Source: Girardia tigrina
Taxonomy: Eukaryota
Length of the DNA stretch: 56,823 bases
Direction of reading: 5' to 3'
Assembly (NCBI GenBank): GCA_001938485.1
Contig: MQRK01254223.1
Span: 76,382-133,204 of the forward strand
Shown here: piece by piece, positions 2,439 through 45,000 of the stretch
Layout of the letters: each line of letters opens with the position of its first letter
Position numbering within the stretch: position 1 is the first letter of the stretch
The notes under the pieces: generated by a model
The model's input: only the letters and a program-made list of their open reading frames with translations
The model's database searches: none
Told to the model about the DNA's origin: nothing
Program-made: the position numbers and the translations under genes

Positions 2439-3477
2439 CACTTGTCAACAGCTAAAAAATTGTCAGGCATTTCTCCACCGATTTAAACTAATTTTGGTGT
2501 TCTGAGTCCGAATATTATATTGATTTTGCTCTATCAGTCGCCATCCCTAGGACCTCATTAATCTACTTCATCATCGCAACTTTATTTGACTTCACACCAC
2601 CCATCACTCGCGCCAATCGACCCCGACTCGGTCCAACAAACCCTAACATCGCACTCGTCAACTCATACAAAATTCGACCATCGGCGGTGAAGCACTTGCA
2701 CTCGTCCTTATCATAAATTTCATAAATTACGGCAGATTGAACACGAAATTCTCCATTTCGATACGATCGATCGACTATCGTCACAAACGAATCCAGAACG
2801 ATCCAATTTCGTTTAATTTTAATCTCCGATCAATCTTCTCTGACTGTTTCGATTATTTTCTTCGTACTATCTTTTTCATTCGATAATTTCACGCAATCAC
2901 AAAGTGCGATCAGTTCTGAGTCGTCTTTCGCTTGATCGTCGATTATCGTCACTCGTAGCATCGATTCGTCTTCGGAAATGTATTCAATTTGAGTGATTTT
3001 ATTTACCATGAAATTTTCGTTGAAAATTGACGACCAGGGGAAGTGAGACGCAGTCATGATGGAGGACTACTGCTGGTCGCTGAAAAGAGACAACTTAGCA
3101 GCTACTCACACACGGGAATCGAAGAAACGTCGATTTATGCCTTAAATTCTGAACTTTTGTGTCACGTAACGCTCATTTTTATACTAATATTATGTATGAT
3201 TATGCTTATAAAATTTGATAGGCTAAATAAAAACTGAATGAATTTGGATACGTGGACTTTCATTTTTTGAGGAAAACGGAAATAATCGTCAGGGATTTCT
3301 CAGCTGATGATCCGCAGTATTTTTTTTAAGAAAAATCAATTTTTTAAAAATGTCTGTAACAAAAGCCTGACCTGATTGAGCAAAACCAAGGTTATTGTCG
3401 GACTCAGAGCATCAAATTTAGTCTAATTCAAAAGAAAACCCTGCATAATTTTCAAAAAACATTTTTATTACCCAGTG
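2439..3477 (+). mobile_element. Non-autonomous Chapaev3 (CMC) DNA transposon carrying a captured gene fragment
   Basis: CAC...GTG termini with ~100-bp imperfect terminal/subterminal inverted repeats (aaactaattttggtgttctgagtccga...ttttgctctatcag vs ctgattgagcaaaa...tcggactcagagcatcaaatttagtct). Inserted in a (TTA)n tract (tta/ttt flanks). 3033-3145 encodes the transposase C-terminus QGK*DAVMMEDYCWSLKRD...SKKRRFMP* (family motif YQGRWD..MMADYCWSLKRD). Confidence 0.85.
2555..3030 (-). pseudogene. GPKOW: Captured fragment of GPKOW (Spp2/MOS2-like, KOW-motif splicing factor)
   Basis: ORFs 2830-3057 and 2563-2784 share a frame and are separated by one TGA. NWIVLDSFVTIVDRSYRNGEFRVQSAVIYEIYDKDECKCFTADGRILYELTSAMLGFVGPSRG aligns without gaps to the remembered GPKOW C-terminal region [59 protein letters not shown]. 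Confidence 0.75.
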
Positions 3478-4860
3478 TTTGTTATTATTATTATTATTTG
3501 GACTATTGATGTTATCGTAGATAAATATTAATCCTCAATATTTTACTGGAAATTATTTTATTAGATTGATTTAATTAAACTATCATCCATTTATTCGTCT
3601 ACAAGATAAAGAATACTTTCTTTTTAATTAATACACAAGATGCGACTTATCATAAATTTAGTTCTGAATAACGTATGACAAAAACAGTCTCCGTAAAACT
3701 AAGGTTTCGTATTCACCTTTTATACTAAATAATTTATCGTTTAAAGAAATTAGAAAAAGTATTTATTCTTCAGTAAGAAAGTAATTAGTTTAAAATAGAA
3801 TTTCTAGTTAACTTTAATATTATACTAATGGAAATATAAAATAAATTTCTTTTCTTCAGTACTGCAACAGTTTACAGTAATAAATAAAAAATATATTATT
3901 TTATATTTCGTTTTTCAACATTCTTTTACTTGATGAAAATTGCATTGGATTATTATCTATATTTCAAAAATAATTAATTTATTTGATTACTTATCTATAT
4001 TTATATACAACCATTTAATTAGTGGAAATAATCATTTTCTTATTATTCATCAATAATATTATTTTTATATTATATTTTGTTTAATTGCAAATTTTACGAA
4101 AAAAGAGTGTGTAAACTGTGACGAAAACACTAATATATAAAAAATCAATAAATATTATTTATTTCTCATTGTTTCTTTTTTTCGTAAGTATAATACATTT
4201 GATATATTTAATTTAATCCATTATTTAAAAATAAAAGGAATTTAATATGATAAATTTTTGACACAAAAAAATTTTTATATTTGTGAGGAAAGTTTGAAAT
4301 CTTTTATGTATTGTGTTGATTTGTAGGATTAATATTTTAATTATTATTAATCAAGACTAACTTTTTTTAATTTTTAAATTTTAAATTAATAAAGGAAATT
4401 AATTTTTTACAATTATCAACGTTTATTTTAATTTTAATCAATGAAGTTTGTAGTAAAAAAAATTTTAAGATTTTTTCTTCTTTCAAATCGTTTAGATAAT
4501 CAAATAAAGATTATTAATCAAATTTTAACAAAATCATATTAGTGTTTTTAATAATATTACTAATGTTCGACGTTTGATTGTAAGATTATAAATATTAAAA
4601 AAATATTTTATTGAAAAGAAAACTTATTGTTTATTTATTGTAACCGATCATTTAAATCTTTTAAACTTATTTTTATCACAATTTAATGAAATTCAAAATA
4701 TGTTCAGAAATAAATCTACTTTTTATTTTTATATTAGTTAATTATTTATAAATTTCTAAATAATTTCAAGAATATTTGTAAGCATTTTAATAATTATAGG
4801 GAGATGGTCGTATTCAAATGGTAGTCTCAACAAGCTTAATGATAATTTGCGATTAACACG

Positions 4861-4899
<39 letters not shown>

Positions 4900-7800
4900 T
4901 TTGACGAAGACCTTTGATTCATCTAAACTTATAGTTCTTAAAATTATGTTTTGTATTTGATAAGGTTATTCTTTAAAAATAAAAAAAATAAATGAATAAT
5001 AAAAAAACAAATAAAAATAAAAAAATAAAAAAAGTATTTATATCATTTTTATATCATTTTTTTTATATTTATATCATTTATATCTTTTTTTAGATGGAAA
5101 ATAAGTTAAATGTTTGATAAATAGACAATTTGTAGCATAAAACCACATTTGAGAGATTCTTTAAGTATATCCCCCATAGAAATCCATACAGAAACAATCA
5201 TTAACATATTTAGTTTATATGGTAATTAAGTAAATGAATCAAATTTGAAATATCAATTAAAATATTACGTCAAACAATTTAACCTTTATTAATAAGATTA
5301 AATTTACAATAAAAGATTATTCAGAATTTATCAGATTATACATAAATAAAAAATCTTAGGTGTTGTTATAACAGTAGCACAATGACTTAGACCTATAAAT
5401 ATATTATTTATTTATATGTAATTATTATAAATGTAATAAACTTAAAATTTAAAACAAAATCAATAAGAACCTAAATAGAAAATAAAGTGGCAATTAATAA
5501 CCTCTCAGAAAAGAAACTATATTGTAAACACCTTTAATAATCCAAATACAGTCACATTTCTCTACAAAATTTCAATCGAAATCAGCAAATTATTTTAGTA
5601 CAAAAATGAAAAATAATCTCCAGAAAAAAGTTCTAATTTATGTTTAAATCATTACCAAAAGTTATATTCACTCAAGCATCTTTAAAAGTCACCTTTTGCT
5701 CAATTCTGTTGTATCCAAAATTATAAAACGTAGTTTTTCAACAGTTTGAAAATACTTCAGCCTGATTGGTCGAATGGAAAACTCGTTTCGGAAAAGTTGT
5801 TTCCCTTGGTGTAATATTTTTGTGAAGAAGGTTTGGGGAAAGCTTAGTTACATTTGGTCATATTGTTTTCAAACACATATAAAAAAGCAAAAACAGACAG
5901 ACAAACAGACAATCAATTTATATAAAAGACTCTGTGTTGTAATACTATTTTAAAAGTTTAATTGTAAATATATTATTTATAACCATATTATTTTTTAAAG
6001 ACATTTGGAGCCTCCTTGAGGAACTGATCTGATGAGTCACGCGCGAAATGCTTCGCGCTTCTGGTCCTAATTTCTTACATCCTAATTTCTTTCTAATTGT
6101 CTCGAGCAGTCTGCTAGATTTATCGTCAGAAATGATAATTTACGCAAGACACATGCGGCATATCTGTGTACGATCGTCAAAAACTATTCTAGTGAATTCG
6201 TGACGGAATAGTTGGATATATTTTACAATATATCAAAAGTAGAATCATGGGCCTAGCACCGAATTTTCGAGTCATTCGATACGTAACTTTTTAGCTTGAT
6301 TTTTATTTATGTCTTATTAACAAATCTAAATTATTTTAATTTGATCCATGCAAATTTTTTAAGTAAATTTAATTTTAAAAATAATAATATTTAAGAAAAT
6401 TATTAAAACATTTATAGTTAAAACTTATACGATCTACAATAATATATTTTAAGCATTATTTTTCACTTATCCTTTTTGTCATTAACAGTCAGAAAAATAA
6501 TTTATGGCAACTGATAAAAATAAGAACAGAAAACCTTGTTTGAGACTGCTTTTATCAAATATTGCCTCATTAAAAATTTAGAGATCTTTCTGGGGATTTT
6601 CAATGATTCAAAATAATTCATAAAGTCAATACGAAAAAAAATTCAAAAGAAGCGATTTTATTATTATTATCATCATTATTATTATTAATATTATATTTAT
6701 TATTATTATTATTAATATTATTATTATCCTTATTATTAATAATTATTTTTCTAACTATTTGAATTTTCAGTTATTAAAATTAACACTTTTTAAAATAAAT
6801 TATACTTAAGCATTTCTTCGGATATAATAACATTTTGATCTATGAAGGAAATCTAAAAATAATTAATACTTAGTGCTACATAATTAAATACAATAATGAC
6901 ATCTTTAACTGGATTGATTCGTTTAACGTTATAGAAAAACGCGTTGTAAGAACATTTTCGTATAACGTACATGATTGAACCCGTAAAACGTGTTACGTAC
7001 AAATGATTCACATTTGACATTTTTCGTTAAAGTGAGTTTAGAACGAGAAATAAGAAAAAACTGTTTAGAACGAAAGATATGCGTTTTATTTAAAATCAAA
7101 CCAAGACCAATTAAAAAAACTTATACATACACCAATACCTTGCTTTGCATCGTTTCCTTTTGCATTTTTTGAAGTTGCGTCGCTGCTTAATAAGTACTAA
7201 TTTTCAATGTGCGTGTTGGGGTTACCTTTGGTAAACTTTAAATTTTTGATATTTTTAAAAAAATCATATTTATATTTTAGATAAAGTAAAAATAATCTCG
7301 ATTAATTAAAAAGAAATAATTATTTAAAATAAAAATTTAAGCTATAGATAATATATTTACTGATTAAAATAAATAAGATTTTTTAAAAAAATATATATTA
7401 TAGTAACCTTTCTACTAATTAAATCGAAATAATTTTTGTAAAAATCATAGTTCACAGATAGTATATTACTAATTAAAATGAAATAAGTTTTTTAAAAAAA
7501 TTTTAGAGTAATGATAATATTTTAATTAAATTGGACAAATTTTTATAAAAATGAAGTTTTCAAAAATTCACAATTAAATATCATCTTCGAAGTTAAAGAA
7601 TATTGTAAAGAAGATTTTGATATATTTTGCAACACTATTTAAAATAAAATCATAATACTTTTTAATGTATAAAATCAATATTAAGGAAATTAAATTTTAA
7701 AAAGAATGCAATTTTATTAAAAACAAATAAAAGATTTTTATTAAAAAATAATTTATCATCGAATGATTAAAAATCAAAAAAAAAACATTTAAAAATTGAA

Positions 7801-10831: not shown

Positions 10832-12155
10832 TAAGGTTGCCTTATAAGTTTTGTCACAAAAAAAACACCAAAATACAATAAAATATATCCATGTCATGCA
10901 AATGCGAAAAAGTAATCACCATCGTGCGTAATACATCTCAGTCAACGTCCAGGGAGGCTGCGTATCCATTTTGGAAAATATCACGCGGTTTCTTGTCAAA
11001 CCAACGTAGAAGATCTTCGTTGATATCGTTGACACCGGCATAATTCTTTCCTCTAAGTGCACATTTCATTGAAGAGAATAGATAGTAGTCAGATTGTGAT
11101 AGATCGGGGGAGTATGGTGGATGTGGGAGTACGGTGATTTCAAGCGCATTCAGCTTGTCCTTGGTCTTAGCAGCCGTATGCGGACGAGCATTATGATTGA
11201 GATTATGAACATTAAGGTTTCCTCCATGGAGCTACCGTCTGTGCCTCTGCTGAACGGCGGTAATGAGACGATCCAGCTGAGTACAGTAGATATCCGCATT
11301 GATTGTAGCATTTGGAGGTAAGACATCTAACATAAGCAGTCCTTGACAGTCCCAAAAGACGGAGGTGTGATGCTTTCGGTTTTTCAGTCTTCGTGTCAGT
11401 GTTGCAAGTGGGTTTTCATCCGATTTTCTCCATGATCTATTGTTGAAAGCACCTTTGTTGTCCCATTACACCCATATCTCATCGCAGGTGATGATTTAGG
11501 ACAGGAAATCATTCTGGTTATAACTATCCAATATCAGTTGACAAATTCTTTTGCGATTATCTTTGTTCTGTTGCGTCAGAGCGTGTGGCACCCATCAATT
11601 TTCCAGGTATCGGTATCCCATTGTATTCAAGTGCCGGCACACCGTGGTTTTATTCTGATCAATTCCCTTTGCAATGATCCTCGTTGTTGCACGCTTGTCC
11701 TCAGTCAGAAACTCGATTATCTTCTCGTCTATGTCAAGAGATGACAGCCCTTCGCGGACTTGATCGTCTGTGTAAAAGTTGTTTTCATGAAAATTGGAAA
11801 TTCCCCTTTCACATGTTTTCTTTGAGACTGTTCTAACTCCAAGGGCCGTGTTAATTTCGTCAATCATCTGTGAGGGTGTTAAATCCCTTTTCCAGCAATA
11901 GTAAATTAATTTACGAATATCAGAGCGATTAAAACCCATTAGGATGATGAAAATGTGCGAAATTATTTTATTAAAAGAAAAATTCATTTAGAACAGAAAA
12001 TAAAAGTTATTGGACTTAAGTAGATCACAAATGCTATTTTATTTCATTCTCATTTTATTAGGGATTGCAAATATATAAGAATTATTTGTGTGATTCAAGG
12101 ATATTTGCAGTTAACAAAGATATATGTGTGCGACAAACCTTATGAGGCAACCCTA
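10832..12155 (-). mobile_element. Full-length mariner (DD34D), inactivated
   Basis: TIRs taaggttgccttataagttttgtc / gacaaaccttatgaggcaacccta with TA flanks. Transposase starts MGFNRSDIRK and contains ITCDEIW, HNARPH and PPYSPDLSQSDYYLF, with stops and frameshifts. Confidence 0.92.
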
Positions 12156-22929: not shown

Positions 22930-24151
22930 CAAGTGCAAAAGGAATGCAGGTTTTTGATTTTTTGTATTTACTGCAATGTTATACAACTAAAGCATGTATA
23001 ATGTTATGAGTCATTCGAAAGCTTAATTTATACTCTTTCAGACATGTTTGTTTAAACCTTATTATAATGTTTTTGTTAATAATTTTGATTTTAATTGCAG
23101 ATGTCAAAACGTGATTTTCGCAACATTTAATTCTATGAGTTAGAGCTAGGGCGTAATGCAGGTCAAACCGGTCGAAAAATCAACAAAGTTTAGGGCAAAG
23201 GAAGTGTCAACGAATACACTGTGCAGCGCTGGTATCAAAAGTTTCGCTCTGGCAATACCAGTCTGGATGATGAGCCTCATGACAGCCGCCCATCGACGAT
23301 TGACAACGACGAATTGAAGGAGCTGGTGGAAGCTGCTCGAACACTCGCAGAAGAGCTTAATGTTGATCCCTCAACCATCGCTCGTCACTTGAAGCAAATT
23401 GAAAAGTCGAAAAAGCTCGATAAATGAATGTCTCACGAATTGAACGAAAGTCAAATAAATCTTCGTTTTGAGGTGTCTTCCGCCCTTCTTCTGTGCAACC
23501 AGAACACCCAATTTCTCAATCGGACTGTGACGAGTGATAAAACGTGGATTCTTTACGACAATCGACGACGTTCGGCAAAATGGTTGGACCGCGTTGAGGC
23601 TCCTCACAACTTTTCGAAACCGAAACTCCACCAAAAGAAGGTTATGACGACTGTTTGGTGGTCTGCAGTCGGTCTCATCCATCACAGCTTTCTGAATACG
23701 GGTGAAACGATTCCCAGAGAGAGTTTGTACTGCCAACAAATTGACAAGTTGCATCAAGATTTCGGACGTATGTGCCAAAGATTGGTCAATATGAAGGGGT
23801 CAATTCTCTTCCACTACAACGCCGGGCCATACATCGCAAAATCGACCCTAAGAACCCTACAAAAACTCAGCGGGCGTCTCATCCACCGACTATCATTTTT
23901 TCAAGCATCTAAACAATTTTCTCCAGGAAAAATGCTTTAAAAACCAAATGACACCGAAGACGCCTTTAACGCTTTCATCGCATCCATAACTCAAGAGGTT
24001 ACACTAGGAGTATCAATAAACTTGTTTCTCGTTGGAAAAATTTTATTGATTCTGATGGATTTTATTTCGATTAATAAAGTTTAGTCTGTGATGAGTAACA
24101 TTTGTTAAAATTTTAGGTTCAAAAACCTGCATTACTTTTGCAACAACCTAA
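22930..24151 (+). mobile_element. Mariner (cecropia-type DD34D), near full length, inactivated
   Basis: TIR core tgcaaaaggaatgcaggttttt / aaaaacctgcattacttttgca; VTSDKTWILYDNRRRS and KKVMTTVWWS motifs; stops and deletions. Confidence 0.92.
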
Positions 24152-24423: not shown

Positions 24424-27400
24424 CTGATTAAACAACAAAACATTTTTATTTACCTTTTAATTGAAAGAAATAAATGTTCTTATTTACATTATTTTTGTTG
24501 AGAACAATTCGAATATATTTTCACATTCATCTCGTCAACAATGATTTATTTCTTTATATTTTCAAAAGCAAAACAAATTTTTATTTTACCTAACTCAAAA
24601 TATTTTATTTGTTATATATTTTTGTTCATTAAAATATTGATATTTTAATATATAAAAATGTTATTGTACATAATTTAACATAAAAAAATGTTATTAGCCA
24701 TAATTTAACACCACCAAAAATTTATTCCTATAACAATTCACATTTCTAAAACAAATTTTCCTGTTAATTTAATTTAATTATCTCGACCCAAATTAATCTA
24801 TTAAATTCTTTTCGATTTAATTTTTAAAACCCTGAAAATTTATTTCGAAAATTTATTTCAAAAAATTATTTAAACTTTATTTTCAAAATCAATTTTTTAA
24901 AATCTCTTATTAAAAATATTTTTATTTATAAATAAATATTTAATATTTTTGTTTTCTTAACATTTTTAATTTTAAGATNNNNNNNNNNNNNNNNNNNNNN
25001 NNNNNNNNNNNNNNNNNNNNNNNNNNNNNNNNNNNNNNNNNNNNNNNNNNNNNNNNNNNNNNNNNNNNNNNNNNNNNNNNNNNNNNNNNNNNNNNNNNNN
25101 NNNNNNNNNNNNNNNNNNNNNNNNNNNNNNNNNNNNNNNNNNNNNNNNNNNNNNNNNNNNNNNNNNNNNNNNNNNNNNNNNNNNNNNNNNNNNNNNNNNN
25201 NNNNNNNNNNNNNNNNNNNNNNNNNNNNNNNNNNNNNNNNNNNNNNNNNNNNNNNNNNNNNNNNNNNNNNNNNNNNNNNNNNNNATAATTTTTAATTTTT
25301 TAAAATATTTAATAAGCAAATTAACATAAAATATTTTACCCTTTAAATTAAAAAAATAATAAACTATTCAGGCGAGATAAAAATTTAAAATTAACCCCTC
25401 ATAGTTATGTTAGTGAATATTCTCGACAAATTTTTACTATTCGTTGTTCATTATTTCGGCCATTTTTTCACAGATAATCCTTTTATATATGACTGTCTCT
25501 CTGTCATTTGATCATCCGTTTTATTTATACTTTATTTATATATCATGTGTTTAAACATACTTTTTTTTAAAAATAAAACCACGATCAAATGTTGAATAGA
25601 TTGCATGAAGAGTGTAAACATTGGCATTGTATTGCCGAGAACTAAAGATTTATAAAACTTTATTAACAGTGTTTTGTGTTCGGAGTGGTTGTGAGTGAGC
25701 GAAGTCCGTTATTTGAAGCCATCGTGAATGAACCGTGATCGGATGCGATATTTGTGTTATCCTCGCGCAAATTTCCCACTCAAATCGTTTTGAGTCGATC
25801 TGTTTACTGAGGCAATTGTTGATGGATGAAAAACGCTCGTATAAATGCCGCTGTTGATTGGCGAACTATCCGATGAGAAATTTATGAAAGAATACCCGTT
25901 ATTTTGACGGATATTCGAGATCAGTGTACCGTTAACGGAATAAATTCCACCCATTAGATTAAAAATTAAAGTTCAGGATTTTCGAAATATTTCTTTACAA
26001 ACATCACAAATAATTCAATTAAATAAAAGTCAATCAATTTAAACAAATAACAATAATTAATTTTTTCATTGTTATTTTCGGTTTCGATATTTTGTGGAAT
26101 ATGTTGAACTTTTAGTATTACGAACTTTTTTTATAAGATTATATGATTTAATTTACAAATGTAATTTTAAATATTGATATAATTTTCGGTCACTACACAG
26201 TGCTTCGATTATTATTATTTCATAAATGTCATCAAAGTTATTAATCAAAATCTAAAAGTCACTTTCACATACCATTCCTAGGAAATCGTTTTCTTATGTA
26301 ATTCAATCAGACAATCTTTAATAAATAATGATCATTGATTTAAGTTGGAGTACAAAGAATATGGAACGCTTCGGCAACTCTAATAAAATACCACTTTGAG
26401 CAATGATTCACTTGGATCGATGAAGAACGTAACAAAATTTTTGAATTAATGTGCATTACATATCGATCTGGTCATTGACACTTTGGTGGATATGTGTCCT
26501 CTGGTGGAGTCGTCATTAAACTATCAATAGTTTTTTGAGAGAAGGTTTTAATTCTATTGAAAGTATCTTTTTATTTTGCAAAACGTGTTAATTTTTATTT
26601 TTTTGGTTTGAAAATAGTGACATTCAGATTTTAATCAGTAAAGTTGATCACAATTATAAAAAAATAATTCCTGAAGCACTATTAATACAGGTTCAAAAAT
26701 CTAGGTTAAACGCGCAAAGTGATTCTTCCGATCATATTTTGACGTAACACATTGTGACTTAATGATCAACTAACTATCTAAACAATAAAAGTTTTTTAAA
26801 ATTCAGAACTAATGATACCACTAACGTGGTAAAACATGTTTTCCAATAAAAATTTAAATTAATGTTTTTATTTTTCTTTGATGTTCGCTTTGTTTTTTTA
26901 ATAATTTATGTCGTTCAAAATTAAAGTCAATTGCGATAAAGATTAATAATACCTCTTCTTTTTTCTTAAGAATTCTATCGCATTTTTCTTTTAGGTCGTC
27001 AAACATCTCCTTCACTAATGCACTGTTTTCATAGTCGGTATACGTCTTCAATTTCTCTGCTCGGTCGGTTATTATGGAGATAATATTTGAATCGAAGTTC
27101 AACAGGTTCTGCATTAATAATAAAGCATTTTATTAGAAAGAGTTCATGTATATAACCTCTTTATTGTCTTCAGGATTCTCTAAAATCTCATCTATTTGCG
27201 ATTCTTTTTCGAAGATTTCTTCGATTAAAGTTTTTGCTGCTGTTAATTTTTCTTCAGCTTCCGATATCTTAGAAACAAACATTAATTAATAATTTATTAT
27301 TTTATCAAAGAATAATTGAAACCTGTTCTAATAAATTATAATATCTTTTTTTCAATCCGTCCAATTGTTGAGAAAATCTCTCAGGAAATTCAATTTCTTT

Positions 27401-30900: not shown

Positions 30901-33900
30901 TTAATAATATTATTTTACTATTTTTAGTTATCATTTATGAATTCAAATCTTTCGATTGATTTCGAATAACAGAAATGATAATAAAACCAAAATAATAAAG
31001 TGTTATTTTAATAAAAGCAAGTTTTATTTCAAAATAATTTTTAAACCTAATTTTAATACTTCTATACTTAATTATCACTTGATTTTCACAATATTTGTTC
31101 AATTTATTAATTTTTTCCGTACATCCGTAAAGTAAATGTTTTAAAATATTGTATTGTCACCGGAAGCAAGCCTGTATAAAAAAATTCAGCTCAATAGGAT
31201 GACTGAAAGTGGTCGAAAAATCAATCGCAAGATTTGTTCCAGACAAACAGACAGACAGACAGACTAGAAACCAAGCTAAGAAAAACGTGGTAATGACAAA
31301 AAATGCATAAGAGTTAAACATACACATAAAATAAAAATGTATATTTACATAAAGTTCCTGGTTTTTCAACTCTTCGCGGTCACGAGGAAAATATAATGAA
31401 TTCAGAAGGTATGTCAAAATTTTTTGAGTCTTCTCAAATTAATAGCACAATATGATTCACTTCTCGAAAGTCATTTGATTCACTCGTGCGTCTATCACTC
31501 ACAGTCTATCAGAAGTGGAAAGAAAAAGTATCTTGAATGAGGATTGGAAATAAAAAAATGTACGTCGTGTCAAAATGACATATGGAGAAAAAACTCTTGA
31601 TTCTGGATTAAAATCAGAAGATGAATTGGATCATGTATTGAAATGTACAGTTGATCAATTTATTCAAGAAGTTACACATTTCAGCAAACTTAATTCGTTG
31701 AATGAAAAATTTGGATATTTCCTCGATGTTGAGCATTTAATGGAATGCAATGATGCAATTAAATTAAAGGAAAAGTGCTTAAGTTTAGAAACAACTTATA
31801 ATTCTGTGTGAAGCCCGTTTAAATGATTTAGCACTATACTTATTTAGATCTATACTTAGTATCGAGAAAAGTACTATTGAAAAAATCAATTTTGATGACG
31901 TCATTGATAAATTTGCAGGCGTTTAAGCATGTAAAATTTGTTTATAAAATAATAGAGCTTTAATTAATATTTTTCAAAAATCTAGTTTTTTTTTACTTAC
32001 ATACTAATTTTAACGTATAAAAGAGTTGAAATGGGTTTAAAATTTGCTTATTTTGTATGAGAAAAATTGATAGTTGTTTTCTTTATGAACAGTAACTGTT
32101 AAAAAAATTTTAGTTTAAGTGGATGGAGGAAGGAAGCGCAAATTCATACTTTGCCCCGGGCACCGGAAACCCTAGATATAATACATATTCATGACATTAA
32201 TAGCGTAAAAATATTGTATTTAAATCTTGTTTTATTAATCAAATGCGATGAAAAATAGAATATTTATGTGTAAAAGGGACTTTTATGTCCAAAAATTCCA
32301 GAAATTGTCTACTAACTAAATAACGGACGTTATGTTAAATGAATTCTGTTAATTACATCCGGTTAAAATAAATCCAAATTTCTGAACGATTGTTATCACT
32401 GACAAATGTGGACAAAATCATTTAAAAAATCTTTAATCTCTTTTATGAAACGGAAATAAGTTATTTTCATAAATATTATTGACAAAAGTTAAAACAAAAA
32501 TATTTATTATTTTATTTTTTTAAAAATAAAACCAATTCGAAAAACAAAAATGTCATTCAATCATCATTTTATCTAATTTAATGATAGAAAATGCACATAA
32601 ATTAAAATTAATTGTTTCATTAAAATGCATTTTATATTTTTTAATATTTTTTTCAGTGTTTTTTTGCAAATAATTTCCAAAAATATAATTTTGGGAAAAA
32701 AATAATAAATTTTTTTCTCTGTATAAATTTTTATATTTGTTTTATTTTTTCAATATTTATACAAATGTTTTTATTTAATTATTTTATCAAACGATATTGA
32801 GATTATTAAATATAATTTATCGGTTAATTTAATACGTAAGGGATTTGGTAAATATTTTTTCTCTAGTTTACAAAAGAAATATAATTATTTGTTTTAATTT
32901 TGATAATACGATTTTTTTTAAATAAAAAAGAATTTATTGAATATTCTTTTTTTGATTTATATAAATTAGCCATAAAATTCACTTTAGCTTGAGTTTGGCA
33001 ATTTTCCAAATCTTCCGGAGAAATAGAAATAATGTCCAGCAAATAAATGTGTTCAGCCACACGGTTCACTTCCCTTTTGAGGTTGTCGAGACGCGGCTCA
33101 AAGTCTGCTGGTCGAGAATATCTTGAAAACAAGTCTTTGAGTGGTCGAAATGATTTCTTGAAATATACAAATTACAAATACATTGATTATATATATTAAA
33201 TTTATGAAAATCAAACGACTTTTTTTATAAATAAAATTATTAATACAAATTAAAATATACTTCCTCCGTCCGGAAATATGGTATACATTTGTATACCAAA
33301 ATGTATACTAAAATGTATACCATATTTCCGGACGGATGGAGTATCATTTTATCTAAATAATCTGATTTGCTCAAGAGCTTTAGTATCATCACAACATTTA
33401 AAACAATTTCTGAGTTGCTTATTATCGTTGGATAATAACACTGGGTAACAAGGTTTTTAAGTCCCAAAAGTTTATACCTGTTCTAAGATAATACAAGCAT
33501 GCTGATTACGAAAATGAAGTCCATTTACTTCTCTAACATCAAGATTTTTATATTTCAAAAAATTGAAAAAATGGTTAATGTAACGGTATACATATCAATT
33601 AATTCACATAATATGTAGACCACAACCATATACACCTTTTGCGCCTTTGGGACAGCCGGGATGATGTCCACTATTAAACACAAAAGGAGTGAGAGAAAAT
33701 TTTGTACCTGAAAAAGAGAATGTGAATAACTGTTCACTTATTTACACTTGCAAAGTATTTTTACCTCTATTAAGAACATTAATTGAATTTTCATTACATT
33801 TATTTGCATCACAATTTGAATTGTTACTAGAACAATTCTCCGTAAAACTTGCGTAGCTCGACAGCGTTCTTGATTGATAATTTTTTTAATAATATTATTT

Positions 33901-36900
33901 AACGTCTTATTATTCGAACAAATTTAAATTACAATTTAATTATTACAAAAATAATTTATACTTTGAAGTAAAATAAATTTTATTTATTTTAAGAAAATTT
34001 TTAATAAAATATTATTTATGAAATATTAATTTAATATTAAAATTGGTTGTTTAAATTTTAATAATTGATTAAATAATCCGACGTTTTAAAATATTTAAAA
34101 TATCAATATTCCATCAGGGTGGAGAAACACAATCCTAAAACAACACACCATACATACAATAAGTACCATTCAAAATATTCCTCACAACCACATCTTCATA
34201 CCAAACTCGGATTAATGAAAAATTTTGTTAAGGGATTTGACAAAGAAGAATGATGCTTTAAGTATTTAGAAGAAACTTTTCCGGAAATGAGTGCTGCGAA
34301 ATTAAGAGAAGAAATCTTTGTCGGAACCCAAATATGCAAAGTTCTAAAGGATCGATGCTTTGTCCTATTCATCTATCTCATTTCAGATTTTACAAAGGAA
34401 ATGTTCTCAAAAAAAACTTATTAAAAAACACTTTGAATACGAAAATGGACAAAAAACAATTTCTGTGACTGAAAAACTTGACGTTATACAGAAATTCTGA
34501 AGCTATTTTTGAAAATAGCATATTCGATTTACCTCTAAACACTTTTTAATTTTCCAGACTTATGAAAAGAAATGTTTTTGTTACCCAGTGTAATTGATAA
34601 TTTAAAAAAGAAGGATCTCCATAATTGCTGTGAACGTTTTTTTCTATCTCGAATACTTCTGAATGTCTCTGAAGAACCAAATGGTGGATGCATAATCTCA
34701 ACTGTAAAGTGAATGAACCACAGGTGTTAATTCTGCAACTTCTATTGTGTCAGAGGAAGTCCTGTCCTATACATTTACGGGAAGCATAGTTGGTCTTTTT
34801 TGTCGGACGGTTGTAATAAGATTACTGTAGTATGTAGAGTTGATTTTTTCACCTTAATCTAAAATTTTGATGTGAATATAAAAAGTATCACCACACATCT
34901 GTAAATCGTCAAATACCTCTTCTTCTTGGCAATTTACACTATACCAACTAATGTTTGGTTTCAGGCCCCCACATACTTAAAAGTACTTCATCCTCCGTAA
35001 TTAAAATATCTAATAAAATCTCATTATGTTTGTCATAACAGGTCAAGTTGTTTTTTCAACTTTTTCTTTGATTCAACTTCATCTCACCATTCAAGAATAT
35101 GTGATCAAATATGGAACCTGGTTTTCTGAAGCTAGATGTGTTCAATTTTGTGAAGATCGTTCCAAGGCTGAGGTTCAATATAGCAACTAGTGATATCGTG
35201 ATGGTTAGACTTTTTATGAATTATTATCTTCAATTTTTCAGTTTCAAGTTTCGATCGGAGCGTCTCCTCTTTCTTCATCAAAAACGGAGATATTTCCACC
35301 TTTTAACCTCTCTACCAAGTATTTCATATTTATTAGATTTGGACAATCGTCCAGGTTTCTTAGACTCATATTCGTTTGTAAAACTAAAACTGTTAACACT
35401 GTGTTACTGGAACTCTGAAATTGTGCTTAAGATAAAAATTTAAATTTGCGTTGAAATATCTTTAATAAAGATTGCTAAAGAAAAAACAAAACTAATATTT
35501 AAAACTAAATTTAATAAAAGTGATCTTGCAAAAACGTATTACGTCTTTAAACACATTTTTCCTTATAAGATTTGCAACTTTTTCAATACGCTAAGTATTT
35601 CTTGAATATATATTATTTTTTAATCTTTAAAATAATTACAGATTGAATTAAAATATCTGATAAAAAATAATATTCTTTCAGATCTTTTAATTTTAATTTA
35701 AAAACCCACTTGTAATTTTAATCTTTGTAAACGGAATCTTTCGCTTGTTTCCTTTTTCCCTTGATATAATTTTCCTTTTTCCAGGTCTTCCAGTTCCACT
35801 AAAAACTTTTCCCATTCGGAAAAATTAAGTTTGAGAATTTCAAACTCCTCGGGCATATCAGCTCCAAGAAGATCTGCCGTGATTCTTGATTTTAGAAGAT
35901 TTGAAGTATCATCAATCCAAACTGTCATTTGAGTAACTCGCTTTTCTACGGATTGGACATGTTCTAATAATTGTTGCAAACTACCAAGACGTAAGTTGGC
36001 CTAAATACAAGATTCTTTAAACAACGTACCGAACTTAATATAATAAATCATACTTTATTCTTAATTATAACCGATTTTTCTTTAATCTGTTCAATTTCCA
36101 TGCTAACACTTCTTTCCAAAACTCTTGCATTCATTAAGGAAAATTTCAGATCTTCTAATCTATTAAAGTCTTCTTCTGAATGATCGCAAACGACTCTTTC
36201 AATCTCCTGATTATGTGAGATATTATAATATGTTTGAATTAATTAATAAAATACATCTATATTTTCGGAAAGCTTTTCAACATCCAAATGGTCACAAGAA
36301 AGAGATTGTTGCATAACTCGATCAACTTTTCCTAACCATTTGTCTTCATCAGATAAAATACCTAAAATTATTCATTTTTCTCTTTTAGTATTGATAAACC
36401 TAAAATTACTTTTAACGTCTTTCAAATGATACTCGGACTCTTTATATCGTTGATATTCTGAATCTAAAAAGTCACAGAATTTGTAGCAATTTTCATTAAC
36501 ATGATCATAGGCCGGAGTTGAATTGATTTCCTTCAGTTTTTCGATGTATGCCTGTTTGGAGTTTTGCATTTCCTAAAGAAAGAAAGATTTAATCAATAAA
36601 TGTAATGATCATTATAAATCTCTTCAATCTATCTAAATGTTATTCTTTATATATCAGTGACGGGTCTCGGTATGCTGGTTTATCTATGTATGTTAAGGTT
36701 CTTCTGTGTATAACAAATGAGTAGCATGAAAGCAATTAAATAATGATAGACCTACTATAAGAAAGCTTACTTATCGGTTCTGATAAAAACGTCTTTTCTG
36801 TTAAGAAAATTTTAAAAGTGAATAATTAAACCAAACAAACGTAACACTAATATTAATATTTAACTGAATCACTCACAAATAAATATAAAAGTAACAGTGT

Positions 36901-39900
36901 TTATAAAAATATATTTATAAAAAGAAGAACTGTTTGAATAGTAAAGTTGATGTGTGTAATTTTAAGATTTTGTGTTCACAATTTGATAATTACTGGGAGC
37001 GGGTGATGTGTGAAGCATTGTTGATCAGATCTTTTGATCCTAAAATCAATGTCCAAACACCATCCTCTTCAACTTTATTGAAAGTATTTTCATGATTTAA
37101 ATGACATAATGATTACATAAACATTGCTTTGATATATAAACGCGAGTATATCGTTGTTAATTCAGTCTGATGATGACGGTCGATCCGTCGAAATTAATCA
37201 CAATATATTTTGACGAAATGTTTTGACTTATAAGTAATATTACATCATTATATTGTACATTATATAATTTATCTATCATTACCGAACTTGGACTTTTAAA
37301 GTCTTTATTGTTTTCAGGATTTTGTAACTTTTCTAGACTTTCTAATCGATCATATTCCACTGAATGCTATTTTTTTGAATATCTCTAAATATTTGTTTAA
37401 TATTTCTAATGGTCCTTTGATTTGAAGAAGCGATTCTGTTTGATTCCTTCAGTTTTCGATTACAACTAAAAGATGGCGAAATATTTCAGTCATTATTAAT
37501 ATTCAGTCGCCAATATGAGAATCAACATCGTTTTTCGCCTTTATTACTATTGAAATTCTCATTTCGTTTTTATAAATAAGGGACTGTAATCATTTTTTTA
37601 TTATAGATACATTTCCTTTTAATTATCACTTTAATCATTTAATGTTTTGTCCATCCCAATTATAAAATTTATTTAGGAATAAATTGCAGTTTCATTTTTT
37701 TACAAAAATTATTTTTTCAGCCTCGTCTAAAGAAATTCTAATTTTCCATGTCAAAATTTTGCTTCTTGTTGAGGAAGGGAATTTCCAATTCGATACATAT
37801 ATTAATTTACCATGTAGATTATCGAAATTCCTAATTTCGGTCCTAGAAAACCGACATGCTAAATTTTGATATGAATGATTTTATAATTAATAGTTTTGAT
37901 AGAGAAAGTTGATATTTACAGAATTTTTGACAAGAGGAATTTAAATCAGTACCGAAATATTAATATTTCATATTTCAGAATTTGGATACATAATATAAAT
38001 GTATATGTTAAATCAGTTTATTGCCATGATGATTTGTCCGAATGTGTCCAGTTGGTCAATGTTGTCGATATTTGTATATTGTCCCAATGTGTCCGTAATA
38101 ATGTCAATCCAATAGAGAGTTAGTAAAGATTTTCAATTCTCCAAATAATTTATAAAAAGTTTTNNNNNNNNNNNNNNNNNNNNNNNNNNNNNNNNNNNNN
38201 NNNNNNNNNNNNNNNNNNNNNNNNNNNNNNNNNNNNNNNNNNNNNNNNNNNNNNNNNNNNNNNNNNNNNNNNNNNNNNNNNNNNNNNNNNNNNNNNNNNN
38301 NNNNNNAAATTTAATAAGTTAAAATCGTTTACTGAAAATATTATTAAAATTCATAATTATCAAACTTTAATTAATTAGTACTTAAAATTGATATCATTAA
38401 ATTAATTTCATTAGATTCAAATAATTAATCAATAACATATCAATCCCATCTGAGTAGGAGATTCACAAATCTAAACAGCATATAAACAACAAACTTACAA
38501 CATTCCAAATTATCCCTCACAAGTTTAAAAGGATTTTTTTTCAAAAAAATAACAACAATTAGAAAAACAAAAATCGTAAGTTAAGAAGTTTAAATTAATT
38601 AAAACCGACTTTCTTTAAAAAGTAAATGTTTAGTAAAAATTTTAAAATAAATAATAAAAACAATAAATGGGGTAAAATTAATAATGTATAACAAAATTAT
38701 TTTGGAAGAAATTAAAGTTACGTTAAATATATTTTAATGAAATTATTTTGAAAATAAAAAAGTTTATTATAAATTAAATTTAAAATATGTTAAATATTTT
38801 TTTTAACAAAAGTACAAATTTGATTTTAACATTTAATAAATGGATTTTGACGAAATGAATAAATTAACGAGAAGAAATTTGTTTAAGTTTTGTGTAATTT
38901 TCATTAATAAATTTTCGAGTGAAATTATGACATTATCGAAGATAATGTCAATGCAACCAACATTTGACAAGAGGAATGTCAATCAGTACAAAAATATTGG
39001 TATTTGGTATTGTAGAATTCGGATATATAACACAAATGTATATGTTCAATCAATTTATTACCATGACCATTTGTCCGAATGTGTTCAGTTGTTCAATGTT
39101 GTCGATATTGGTATATTGTCCCAATGCATCCGTACTAACTTCAATCCAATCCAGTATCTCCGATATTACCTTTTGATCACGACTTTCTTCGGAATCTGTG
39201 TTTCTTGACTGGTTAATCAATTCTTCTGGTTTATCTAAAATATTAAATCTGTAATTTATTTTTGTATTATTAATCCCTCACCTAAAGATTCTGTAGAGAA
39301 ATTTGAATGTTCCATATCAATGTCAATTAGACTGTCTTCTGTTCTCGAGTCTGACTCGACAATAATTGCTACCTGTTGAGGGGTTACTTTCATTTTCGGA
39401 TTGACAGGAATATTTGGTTTATTCATAACGTTTTGAAGATAATTCTTAAAAGTTAGATATCTTTGATGAAGAGTATCCCATTTTTTTTGTAAATCATTCT
39501 TTTTTAAATGCATTTCCAATCTGAGATCTTTTTCAAAATAAGCTTCCAGATTAACTGTTGATATTTCAATATTCTTTAATGTCGGTATGAGATTCTCCAT
39601 ATCTTCAATTCCAGCTTCAGTTTCTTTTATTGTCTCAATAATTATATCAGTCTCTGTGTATTCCTGATGTTCACATTCATCTAAATAGCTCCCAACTTCA
39701 TCCAGCCACCGATCGAACTCAATTGTTTGATTCTAATAATTTAAAATTAAAAAAATAGTATTTTTTAGACAATATTATACTTTCCATTGAAGAGATCTTT
39801 CCGATAAATCTTTCAAGAAGCTTATTCTTTTTTCAAGTCGTACCCCGACACTTTTGAAGGATTTTTGCATTTCAAATAATACTTTATACCGTCTTGATGA

Positions 39901-41974
39901 AGAATCTGGGGTCGGGATTTTATTCAACAATTCCAATTGATTCTCGTATTTTATAAGTAAATCCTAATATATGGTTCCATCAATACTCAGTAATTGAAAA
40001 AAAATTATTATTATTTTTTGAAAATTATAACTTATTTATTTATAATTTATAACAGCCAATCTAAATGTAATTATATATGTAAACTGAATCATATTAGGTT
40101 GGTCGAAAGATAATGGCGGTTTTGGGACACAAACTTCAAAGACGTGCAAATTAACAGAAACAAAAGTTTATTAATCAAAGTATGAACCGTTGGCATCAAT
40201 ACATTTTTGCCAACGAGAAACAAGTTGTTTTATTCCATCAGCATAAAATGCATCGGTTCTCGAAGCGACGAATTCTTAAAGGCATTTTGAGCATCATTTT
40301 GGTTTTTAGGTCTGGTGAATATGGTGGATGAAGCAGGGTTTCATAGCCCAACTCATTAAGCTTTTGAAGAATCACTTTTGAAATATGAGTTCTAGCGTAA
40401 TCTTGAAGAAGGATGGGACTTTTTCGATTGACCAATCCCGGACAAAGGGTTTTCAATTTTTTATGCATTTCAGCAATTTCATGACAGTACCTCTCCGCTG
40501 TGATTGTTTCATCTGGATTATAGAAACTATAGTGGATGATTCCAGCATCACACCACCAAACTGTCACCATAACCTTACGGGGTGTTAGTTTCGGTTTTGG
40601 AAAGGGTTTCGGTACTTCATCTTTGTCCAACCACTGTGCAGATCGACGTCGGTTATCATACAGGATCCATTTCTCATCACAGGTAACAATACGATCAAGA
40701 AATGAATCATTTTTATTGCAAAGATGATTGGCAGAACAAATTTCATAGCGTCGGTTCTTTTGATTTTCATTCAAATCATGTGGAACCCATTTATCAAGTT
40801 TCTTTATTTTTCCAAGTTGTTTTAAATGATCCAGGACTGNNNNNNNNNNNNNNNNNNNNNNNNNNNNNNNNNNNNNNNNNNNNNNNNNNNNNNNNNNNNN
40901 NNNNNNNNNNNNNNNNNNNNNNNNNGACCACGACCTTCTTCATCTTCAAGGTTTTCATCTCCATCAGAAAATTTTCGGAACCATCGTTGCACTGTGCGCT
41001 CAGCAGCTGTTCCCTTGTCAAACGCTTTATTGGTATTGCGAGCCGTTTGTGCTGCTTTACGACCCAGTTTAAATTCGTACAACAAAATTGCTGGAATTTT
41101 AATTTTTTCCATTATTAATTTAGCACCGTAAATATTCTAAAAAATAACAACAATATGTTAATAATGGCTATAGGAATATACAGCTAGGCATAAGATTTCA
41201 AATAATATCTAACACTAATGTATTTAAACTTATATACATATTAAAGTAGATAAACAAAGTATAAAGCTAAAAAACCATCATTATTTTTCGACCAACCTAA
41301 TATATAGTATCGAATGTAAACTTTGGAAATTTTGTCAAAAATAGATTACGATCTGAATGCACTTGAAGTATGGAACTAGGAATGCCGAGAAACTACGAGT
41401 GAAACCGTCTAGAATATTTTAATGTAGCACTAAAGTTGGCATAAATTTATATGTTTTTACTGCATACGGAGAAGCCCCCACAGCAGAAACAAAATAGTTA
41501 ATTTCCATGTCTTATGTTAAAGTAGGACTAGATTAGTGAAATTAAAACATCATATTTGCACATACTTAATGGTTTTTTGAATTCACATTATTATTTGATG
41601 TTGAGATTATATACTCAAATTGTGGCACGCGTACCCGTAGTGACACAGAAGTTAATTTTCATGGTGTATATAGGTACAGCAAATAAGTGATAAGAAAAAT
41701 ACTGAAAATACTGCAACACAAACATTCAGTCACAATCATTCATTATCTACCTTTATTGGAGGATTAATCATAAATAAGCTTTCAGAACCGTTTGAGATAC
41801 TACTAACATTTTTTGCTGTAATGTTAATTAAAAATAAATATTTACTGTGTGGCATCCTTATTTTGGTTTTCCTTAGATGGACTGATAATGTATTCATATA
41901 TATATATATANNNNNNNNNNNNNNNNNNNNNNNNNNNNNNNNNNNNNNNNNNNNNNNNNNTATGTATGTATAAT

Positions 41975-42006
<32 letters not shown>

Positions 42007-45000
42007 GAATACATTATCAGTCCATCTAAGGAAAACCAAAATATATATATATACATGTATAAATTCATTTGAAGTACTCGAACTTCAAACAACATGAATA
42101 GATGCACTCATTGATTAGTATTGTCCTTCGGTATTATTAAGAGCACCAATGTGGTTTTCACACATTTATTTACTTCACAATTTGAATTGTTTTTCGGACA
42201 ATTCTCAGCAAAACTTTCATTATTTGACATCTCACTAAACTGATAAATTTTTCTTAATGTCTTCTAACAAACAATTATTCGAACAAATTTTCATTTTAAA
42301 TTATTTTCAGATTTTATTTTTACAATTCTATTTTTAAAACACATTTCCATATACTAAACTTAACATACAAAACTCGACATACCAAATTTTAAATAGAAAA
42401 AAAAGAAAATTAGTATTCTTTATTTATCAATAGAGTACATGATATAATTTTGTAACTTTACAAAATAATCTTTATAAGGCTGATATAAAATAAGACTTAC
42501 AATTTTAAAAAAACCTATAACATCATCCTATCAATTTTTTCAGTGCGAGTTCTATGAAACCGCTGTCTTTATTTAAAACTAGTAATTTTTATTAATTAAT
42601 AATTTATACAAAATTGCAATCAATATATTTGTTAAATTAATTGCTGAAAACGGAAAACTGGGTATATTAATATTCGTTAAAATAAATTATAGTAAAAATA
42701 AAATTATATTTAAAAATTATGACGTGACTGTCAATTAAGACTTAAAAAACAAAAAAAAAGTTAATAAATTATTCATTTTTTATAAAACTTTAACGTGATT
42801 TATGAAAAAAAATAATTAATTTCAAATTTTTGTACAGTATTAATCAATAAATAAATAAATATAATAAAACTTCGTTATTACGTTACTTCGGTTTGTACGG
42901 ACAGGAGTTTTTGCTTACGAAATTATAAAAATAAGGTTGTACAAATTAACTTTTCTACCCTCAAAAATTGAAAAAAATATTTAAAAATTTCAAAAAAAAG
43001 TTTTGTTTCAATATGAAGAGCGACCTTAAAGAAACTTAACACATTTAACGCGTGGTACCATGAATAAAAAAAGCTTAACATACATACTTTGCACTTTGTC
43101 AATGTTCCACTTAATCTCATATTCCTCAATGAGATGTTACTTACTTAAATTTGTGGTCTTAGTGTAGACCTCCGCTTCAAAGCACCTCAGAGGATTTAAG
43201 AGCTACATGGTGCGTTCAATAAGTAGTGAGCCTAACATAGAAATAATATTCTGATTCCAATGAATTTTTTTTCATAACAAGCAAGTTATTAAGGTAATAT
43301 TTGTGATATTTGCTTTAATCTATTATTCGTGTTTAGGTTAGAGAGAGCATAAATTCGAAAATGTCATTTCAAAACGTCCCATATCAAAGCGTTATTCGTT
43401 TCTTGTTAATGAAAAGGAAAAGCCGGGAAGAAATATTCGTGGAGCTTAATTCTGTTTATGGCGGAGAGAGTCCGTCCATATCTACTGTCAAACGATGGTT
43501 CAACCATTTTCGAGATGGTCGTACCTCTGTTTTTGATGAAGAAAAGTCAGGTAGGCCACGTGAAATTGGCGAAGAAATAGCGAAAAAACTGAAGAAAATC
43601 GTACAGTGTGAGCGACGAATCACCACCAAAGAACTGACAATGCGATTAAATGTCAGCACACGTACATTACAATCACTGCTTGCGGAAACTGGAATTAGAA
43701 AATTGTGTTCACGCTTCGTGCCACGGTTTTTAACAGTAGACATGAAGAATCGGCGATTGATGTGCTGCCAGGAAAACTTAAACCTCTATGAACGTATTGG
43801 AGACCGCTTCTTACAGAATATTATGACAATGGATGAAGCACCACTTGCCCTTATGTCCCAGAATCAAGACGTGAGTCTAAAGAGTGGAAGCTGCCAGGGT
43901 AAGGGTATTCGAAGAAGATGCGATCATCAAGCTCTCACAAAAAAGCTCTCATCACCACTTTTTGGGATGCAAATGGAATGATCCTCGCTGATTTTGTGGA
44001 AGCTGGTGTTCGTATAAACAGTGAATACTACTCCCGGTTCGTGCTACAGGTCAGAAAGCTGAGAAGGAAGAGCAGAGTTTGTGAGTTATTTTGCAGGACA
44101 ATACACCCATCCATACAAGTGGGCTGTCAATGTCATCAATTGAGAGTTGTGGCCTCACCCTACTCTCTCACCCTCCATACAGCCCGGATCTGGCGCAATC
44201 CGATTATCATCTTTTCAACCACCTCAAGCGAGCTCTCAAGGGTCAACATTTTGCTACGAAAGAAGACTTCTAGGATGTAGTCTCAAATTTCTTGGCTCAA
44301 CGGCCACCGAAATTCTTCGAAAAAGCCTTTCTAGACCTTGTTGTGCGCTGGAAAAAATGTGTTGGTGTGAATGGAGATTTCTTTGAGAAATGATACCTTT
44401 ATAACTTGCTTGTTATGAAAAATAAATTTCATTGGAATCGGATTATTATTTTTATGTTAGGCTCACTACTTATTGAGCGCACCACGTACAACTGGACCAT
44501 GGAAGCACTTCATTGTGTGTTTCCTGGTATGACTACAAATATAATCTTTCCATAAAACTCAGCTCGACTGTTAAAACCATTATGAACCTTAGGTTAAAAG
44601 TATTTCCTCGAAATGGAGTCATTCTTATCACTGTGCCATCGATAATGTGCAACTCAGAAGTACAACTAAACTTTGATACAAAAAAGATCACGGGCTATCT
44701 TTCAATTTATGTTGTTCATATGCGGTAGAAGAGTTTCAATCTTCAGGCGCTGTTGCTTTATTGATAATAAGGCTAATTATTGAGTTACATTATCACTAAT
44801 AAGACAAGCATCAGAACACATAAAATAATAAACATTGGGGGCGAGAGAGATGGTGAGACTGCAAATGTTCATTAAAACATTAATTCACATAGCAATAAGG
44901 TTAATTTTAAAAATATATATTTGCGCTTAGATTATTTTATTATTTTTACTTTTATTAACATTATGATTATTATTCTGACTTGTTATTGATACAAATGTGT

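Follow-up and report, generated by a model that had tools for sequence, protein, structure and literature searches.

A Chapaev3-type transposon relic of Girardia tigrina in which an antisense GPKOW-like fragment stands in place of the transposase body

When transposons with terminal inverted repeats (TIRs) capture gene fragments, exons can be shuffled and regulatory antisense RNA can arise. Such capture has been well studied in plants, where Pack-MULEs and Pack-CACTAs carry a gene fragment between the ends of an autonomous family and are often multicopy and often transcribed; the CACTA elements belong to the same superfamily, CMC, as the Chapaev3 group. The animal catalogue consists mainly of hAT and Tc/mariner elements. 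Tan et al. (2021; PMC8277862) collected 370 Pack-TIR cases from 100 animal genomes, 87% of which are hAT or Tc/mariner. In these elements the interior of a TIR transposon is replaced by a small exonic piece of non-transposon DNA, with a published median of 224 bp, and an antisense arrangement relative to the parent gene is also discussed. The single-copy cases, whose parent often lies within 15 kb, were ascribed to transposition-independent gap filling with template switching (PMC8277862). In the text and supplements of that study Chapaev occurs only as a column of transposon counts, and our search of the literature found no report of gene-fragment capture by a Chapaev3-group transposon. The original prediction made for the locus described here, which knew of no Chapaev3 case, agrees with the literature on this point; its remark that such capture is much less known in animals gives way to the large-scale documentation of animal TIR capture (PMC8277862).

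Merrow, Garfield and Conan are published Chapaev3 families (Zhang et al. 2014; PMC4079192). They are 2.29-2.46 kb in length, have invariable 5'-CAC...GTG-3' termini, insert into a 3-bp TWA target between A and T, and encode transposases of 556-562 aa with the three blocks that are hallmarks of Chapaev transposases, C(2)C, LH and H(4)H. Their host distribution is wide and patchy, repeated horizontal transfer is known for Chapaev3 families, and a member of the group is reported from an insect bracovirus (PMC4079192). Non-autonomous derivatives are also known, and the published ones are plain internal deletions (MITEs; PMC4079192), whereas the copy described below has foreign coding DNA in the deleted part.

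The stretch of Girardia tigrina DNA analysed in this work (hereafter the window) is 56.8 kb in length, with a G+C content of 26%, a CpG observed/expected ratio of 1.18 and six runs of N; an Rfam scan of the whole window gave no match. Its positions 2439-3477 are occupied by the element under study, the parts of which are given below, with L003 and L006 denoting two relatives from metagenome contigs.

2439 to 3477, plus strand (the strand of the transposase remnant): the whole non-autonomous Chapaev3-type element, 1,039 bp, recognised by CAC...GTG ends, inverted repeats and two end regions that are homologous to L003 and L006
2436 to 2438, no strand: TTA following an A, the putative left copy of the target-site duplication, which fits A-TWA
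2439 to 2537, plus strand: the left terminal inverted repeat, sole remainder of the 5' part of the element; homology to every relative ends at the same point
2538 to 3034, minus strand: the cargo, a foreign segment of 497 bp with a decayed GPKOW-like coding remnant antisense to the transposase
3035 to 3145, plus strand: the remnant of the transposase gene, its last 36 codons and stop codon, found by tblastn with the 557-aa protein of L003
3146 to 3371, plus strand: the non-coding 3' interior, 85% identical to L003 5591-5928 when taken together with the right repeat
3372 to 3477, minus strand: the right terminal inverted repeat, from the alignment of the repeats and from the relatives
3478 to 3480, no strand: TTT followed by G, the putative right copy of the target-site duplication, two of its three bases equal to the left copy

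The first bases of the element are CAC at 2439 and the last are GTG at 3477, as in all Chapaev3 elements. Its ends are imperfect inverted repeats that align over about 105 nt, in agreement with the roughly 100 bp originally predicted, and their core of 58 nt is 79% identical. A 20-mer of this core was found in the window in the two arms only, with 0 chance matches expected. An (ATT)n microsatellite lies on both sides of the element. The flanking bases are A-TTA on the left versus TTT-G on the right, and the right side departs from the A|TWA|T rule. The outer left-end sequence (about 45 nt) recurs as a third copy, in direct orientation, at about 3265-3310, some 170 bp inside the right end. The same internal copy is seen in the relatives, at about 5705-5760 in L003 and about 230-277 in L002; that of L002 keeps the full terminal sequence, so that L002 53-277 resembles a mini-element of 225 bp bounded by CAC...GTG. 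About 330 bp upstream of the element, the plus-strand segment 2006-2110 has 43% G+C, an open frame and splice-like boundaries (a pyrimidine-rich stretch ending in AG before it, GT after it). This segment is a putative host exon, and it may place the element in an intron.

To identify relatives of the element, we scanned the JGI/NCBI metagenome, viral and prokaryote genome collections with a pattern made of two inverted-repeat blocks that do not differ between the arms. Six loci on JGI/NCBI metagenome contigs, L002 to L007, carry relatives, and the core blocks of the repeat are identical in both window arms and in all six. The viral collection gave no match to the two-block pattern. Two further matches were rejected as chance: a contig of a Parachlamydiaceae MAG matched by the gapped pattern (L008) has no extended similarity, and the match of a repeat 19-mer to a phage contig (L001) does not extend. 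Locus L003 contains a complete relative at 3475-5928. With 2,454 bp it is as long as Merrow (2,451-2,455 bp; PMC4079192), it has CAC...GTG ends, and its flanks, A-TAA on the left and TTA-T on the right, both fit TWA and yet differ from each other. Of the family copies whose left flank was inspected, 5 out of 5 have A-TWA. On the same soil-type metagenome contig, the Chapaev3 copy is adjoined by a hAT-like transposase frame of 659 aa (L003 636-2615); the presence of both transposases indicates a eukaryotic, transposon-rich contig.

The complete relative harbours an intact transposase reading frame of 557 codons at L003 3915-5588. The encoded protein shows the C(2)C, LH and H(4)H blocks and is, by eye, colinear over its whole length with the Garfield_BM protein of 556 aa (PMC4079192, supplementary Fig. 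S1). It has no match to a Pfam family or to a solved structure. Its cluster at 90% identity comprises 113 members of 552-589 aa from JGI, ENA, Logan and NCBI data, among them a protein of the mantis shrimp Oratosquilla oratoria, XP_076044773.1. Judged from these sequences, the cluster points to a young and widely spread family, and its many sources agree with the patchy occurrence and horizontal transfer known from Chapaev3. We concluded that the assignment to the Chapaev3 type, as originally predicted from the termini and the transposase tail, is well supported at the level of sequence features, namely the transposase motifs, the CAC/GTG termini, the A-TWA left flanks and the colinearity with Garfield_BM.

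Compared with L003 and L006, the window element matches only at element positions 8-99 and 597-1039, at 85-88% identity. Its left repeat is 88% identical to L003 3482-3573 and to L004, and 87% to L006, and element positions 597-1039, corresponding to window 3035-3477, are 85-86% identical to L003 and L006. The parts kept are therefore the left 99 bp and the right 443 bp. Homology ends after 2537 and restarts at about 3033-3035, and these points are the same against all relatives (alignments with four or five of them). Exactly between the two sharp breakpoints, about 1.9 kb of the relatives' body is replaced by the 497-bp cargo, as had been predicted when the cargo was placed where the transposase body should be. 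The stretch of about 340 bp that separates the left repeat from the transposase start in the relatives is absent from the window copy. On the plus strand, 3035-3142 encodes residues 522-557 of the 557-aa L003 protein (tblastn, 32 of 36 residues identical, E=3e-15), and the DNA of this tail is 92.5% identical to L003 5478-5584. The tail had been put at about 37 codons; we measured 36, one of which has become an in-frame stop. The transposase remnant is thus broken twice, by the loss of about 520 codons and by this stop.

The 497 bp of cargo (originally given as about 480 bp of CpG-richer DNA) have 41-42% G+C and a CpG observed/expected ratio of about 1.7, compared with 26% and 1.18 for the whole window. 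No counterpart of the cargo was found in the six relatives or elsewhere in the 56.8-kb window. Read antisense to the transposase, one frame contains 2 stops in 165 codons, whereas the other five frames contain 5-16, and no frameshift was detected in it. The run originally described as about 155 codons with one internal stop is this frame as far as its second stop.

To find out what the cargo encodes, its open pieces were split at the stop and searched separately. The downstream piece matched Pfam GPKOW_C (PF25088) with E=1e-5 and 26 bits, below the curated gathering cut-off of 65, and human GPKOW in spliceosome structures (7dvq_y residues 355-431) with E=2e-5. Among 1.84 billion proteins, the piece matched P0003, a tick GPKOW-like protein, with E=5e-9 and P0004, a UniParc entry for a protein with KOW and GPKOW_C domains, with E=5e-7. 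Four other proteins that rank above or near these true relatives, P0001, P0002, P0005 and P0006, were discarded as tandem-repeat proteins that add up spurious scores. Aligned pairwise, the piece and P0004 are 31% identical over 86 residues with no gap (E=5e-16), and the closest GPKOW-like relatives of the cargo are only 29-31% identical to it. By tblastn (E=1e-12), GPKOW-like similarity in the window is located solely at the cargo and extends right up to the left repeat.

The upstream half of the cargo gave no significant match in Pfam, in PDB or in the comparison with P0004; when it is aligned locally to P0004, the best placement is at the KOW motif of that protein, with colinear spacing (p=0.11). 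Neither a G-patch nor the Pfam KOW motif was matched by the cargo pieces at E up to 10, and a search for homologous proteins within its own length band returned nothing for either open piece. The gap-free similarity originally predicted for the whole frame consequently holds for the downstream 86 codons or so, as shown by Pfam, PDB and P0004, and falls short of significance in the upstream half. In the same way, what had been called the KOW-domain region of the splicing factor proves to be an antisense remnant resembling GPKOW_C, with no Pfam KOW motif and no G-patch. On sequence grounds, about half of the cargo is shown to be of GPKOW-like origin, and the same origin is plausible for the other part.

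An AlphaFold model of the downstream piece, made with three sequences, has a pLDDT of 64, rising to about 80 in the core, and contains five strands. Its best PDB matches are chains of the pre-Bact spliceosome, the SH3-like/KOW tandem of KIN17 and KOW6 of Spt5, with E=0.02-0.2; the likeness of the model to an SH3/KOW-type barrel is suggestive only. The model of the upstream piece is of low confidence and has no meaningful fold match. With factors of the GPKOW/MOS2/Spp2 type the cargo shares, in its downstream half, a gap-free alignment to the C-terminal domain of GPKOW; it differs from them in being a fragment with two stops and 29-31% identity that scores below the Pfam gathering threshold. 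We consider the cargo to be, as far as its alignments tell, a diverged fragment of the GPKOW C-terminal domain and not a member of the family in its own right.

The homologous 86-92 codons are free of intron-like interruption, as a cDNA origin would give. This would suit a processed pseudogene, or some other nested insertion, that entered an already deleted element with no capture by repair. However, neither a poly(A) tract nor a flanking duplication, which the original prediction had named as signs of such a later insertion, is present at 2538 or at 3034, and the cargo starts and stops mid-gene, exactly at the two breakpoints of the element. A nested insertion is therefore highly improbable.

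Instead, we consider it quite probable that the window element is dead and non-autonomous, that it derives from a transposon of the Chapaev3 group (CMC superfamily), and that its interior was replaced through repair by the antisense GPKOW-like fragment. This reading is favoured by the two intact ends, the mid-gene fragment, the sharp breakpoints and the opposite orientation, all of which match the Pack-TIR pattern. The window element has the arrangement that defines the Pack type, in which non-transposon DNA is enclosed by the two ends of a transposon; in overall design it is also like the plant Pack-MULEs and Pack-CACTAs, from which it differs in that those are plant elements, often multicopy and transcribed. 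The events may have been as follows. A Chapaev3-group transposon would have inserted into the (ATT)n microsatellite, and a double-strand break or an excision gap would have arisen inside it. Repair synthesis could then have switched template to a GPKOW-like gene and back again, a form of gap filling that leaves filler DNA, and in this way have brought in the SH3/KOW-like domain of the GPKOW C-terminus, probably along with the stretch that precedes it. The stop codons of the cargo and of the transposase tail would have been gained later; since both carry stops, the unit is a relic and not a gene, and a single decayed copy such as this would have no evident function of its own.

Several observations stand against capture by repair. 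The flanking trinucleotides TTA and TTT differ, the identity to known GPKOW-like proteins is as low as given above with a Pfam score of 26 versus 65 bits, and the upstream half reaches only p=0.11. Moreover, a parental GPKOW gene was found neither in the window, which covers 2.4 kb upstream and 53 kb downstream of the element, nor in the JGI metagenomes or the GTDB contigs. In this respect the element is unlike many published single-copy cases, and the animal Pack-TIR study required an identified parental copy (PMC8277862), which has no equivalent in cis within the window. With these reservations, we infer that the cargo was captured from a GPKOW gene of the host.

In its fullest version, the original prediction would make the element a mobile Pack-Chapaev3. 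Such an element would be multicopy and would be a source of antisense or small RNA directed at GPKOW of the host, or else of a chimeric protein from a new ATG. Both inverted repeats are indeed kept, with core blocks identical in the two arms and in the six relatives, the target flanks are of Chapaev3 type with the microsatellite continuing on both sides, and there is an ATG within the antisense transposase tail that is in frame with the cargo. On the other hand, a second copy with the same cargo was found neither in the window nor in the JGI metagenomes and GTDB contigs, and the element may be single-copy. The predicted ATG is real, but it heads a frame interrupted by two stops, so that a GPKOW-like product is impossible. 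As to the antisense RNA that the element promoter was expected to drive, the idea loses its main support with the deletion of the 340 bp or so that precede the transposase start in the relatives. Taken together, a mobile element with activity of this kind is quite unlikely. Of the original prediction, nearly every sequence detail is confirmed and the structural reading holds; the functional reading is unsupported.

A further possibility concerns the time and place of the capture, namely that it happened in an earlier host and that the cargo-bearing element then entered the present genome by horizontal transfer. The family occurs in unrelated sources at 84-92% DNA identity, on contigs of 36-46% G+C versus 26% for the window, its transposase cluster of 113 members at 90% identity extends to the mantis shrimp protein, and horizontal transfer of Chapaev3 families is recurrent (PMC4079192). 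In addition, the third-position G+C of the cargo, 0.44, is above that of most candidate host reading frames of the window (0.21-0.36). The putative host exon at 2006-2110, however, is as rich in G+C as the cargo. Neither G+C nor third-position G+C is therefore informative about the origin of the cargo, and composition does not discriminate. The cargo is found in 0 of the 6 relatives, and no donor lineage was identified. We regard a capture in an earlier host as unlikely. The still bolder combination, in which a mobile multicopy Pack-Chapaev3 acquired a portion of a spliceosomal gene within one animal lineage and ferried it horizontally to another, is very unlikely; if true, it would give a concrete example of host coding sequence moved between species by a cut-and-paste transposon.

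Under the preferred reading, that of a relic formed by repair, the outcome known from the hAT and Tc/mariner elements of animals is now seen for Chapaev3. The case is unusually clean, as an intact relative fixes both breakpoints within a few bases. The wide and patchy family to which the element belongs would be well suited to studying whether transposons that are transferred horizontally take captured host sequence along.

Several other features of the window were observed. Helix-rich open frames lie on the minus strand at 26854-27114, 32863-33132, 35698-35979 and 39256-39600 and could be exons of one large gene. The candidate host reading frames had no match in Pfam or PDB, and an exact look-up of ten reading frames of the window in the protein collection showed none of them to be present. 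Fragments of mariner-type transposases (Pfam HTH_48 and Transposase_1) are located at 11595-11987, 23428-23940, 40238-41112 and 43361-44280. Their best relative outside the window is 79% identical, and a mariner match annotated in a Sphingomonas assembly is probably a contamination of that assembly. At 33439-34590 there is a second Chapaev3-like non-autonomous element, which belongs to a different family and has short CAC...GTG termini. The TAA/TAA duplication at its flanks is perfect and sits between A and T. Inside, 34188-34352 encodes part of a transposase, with 49% identity to the L003 protein (residues 375-429), and the remaining interior may contain further foreign DNA.
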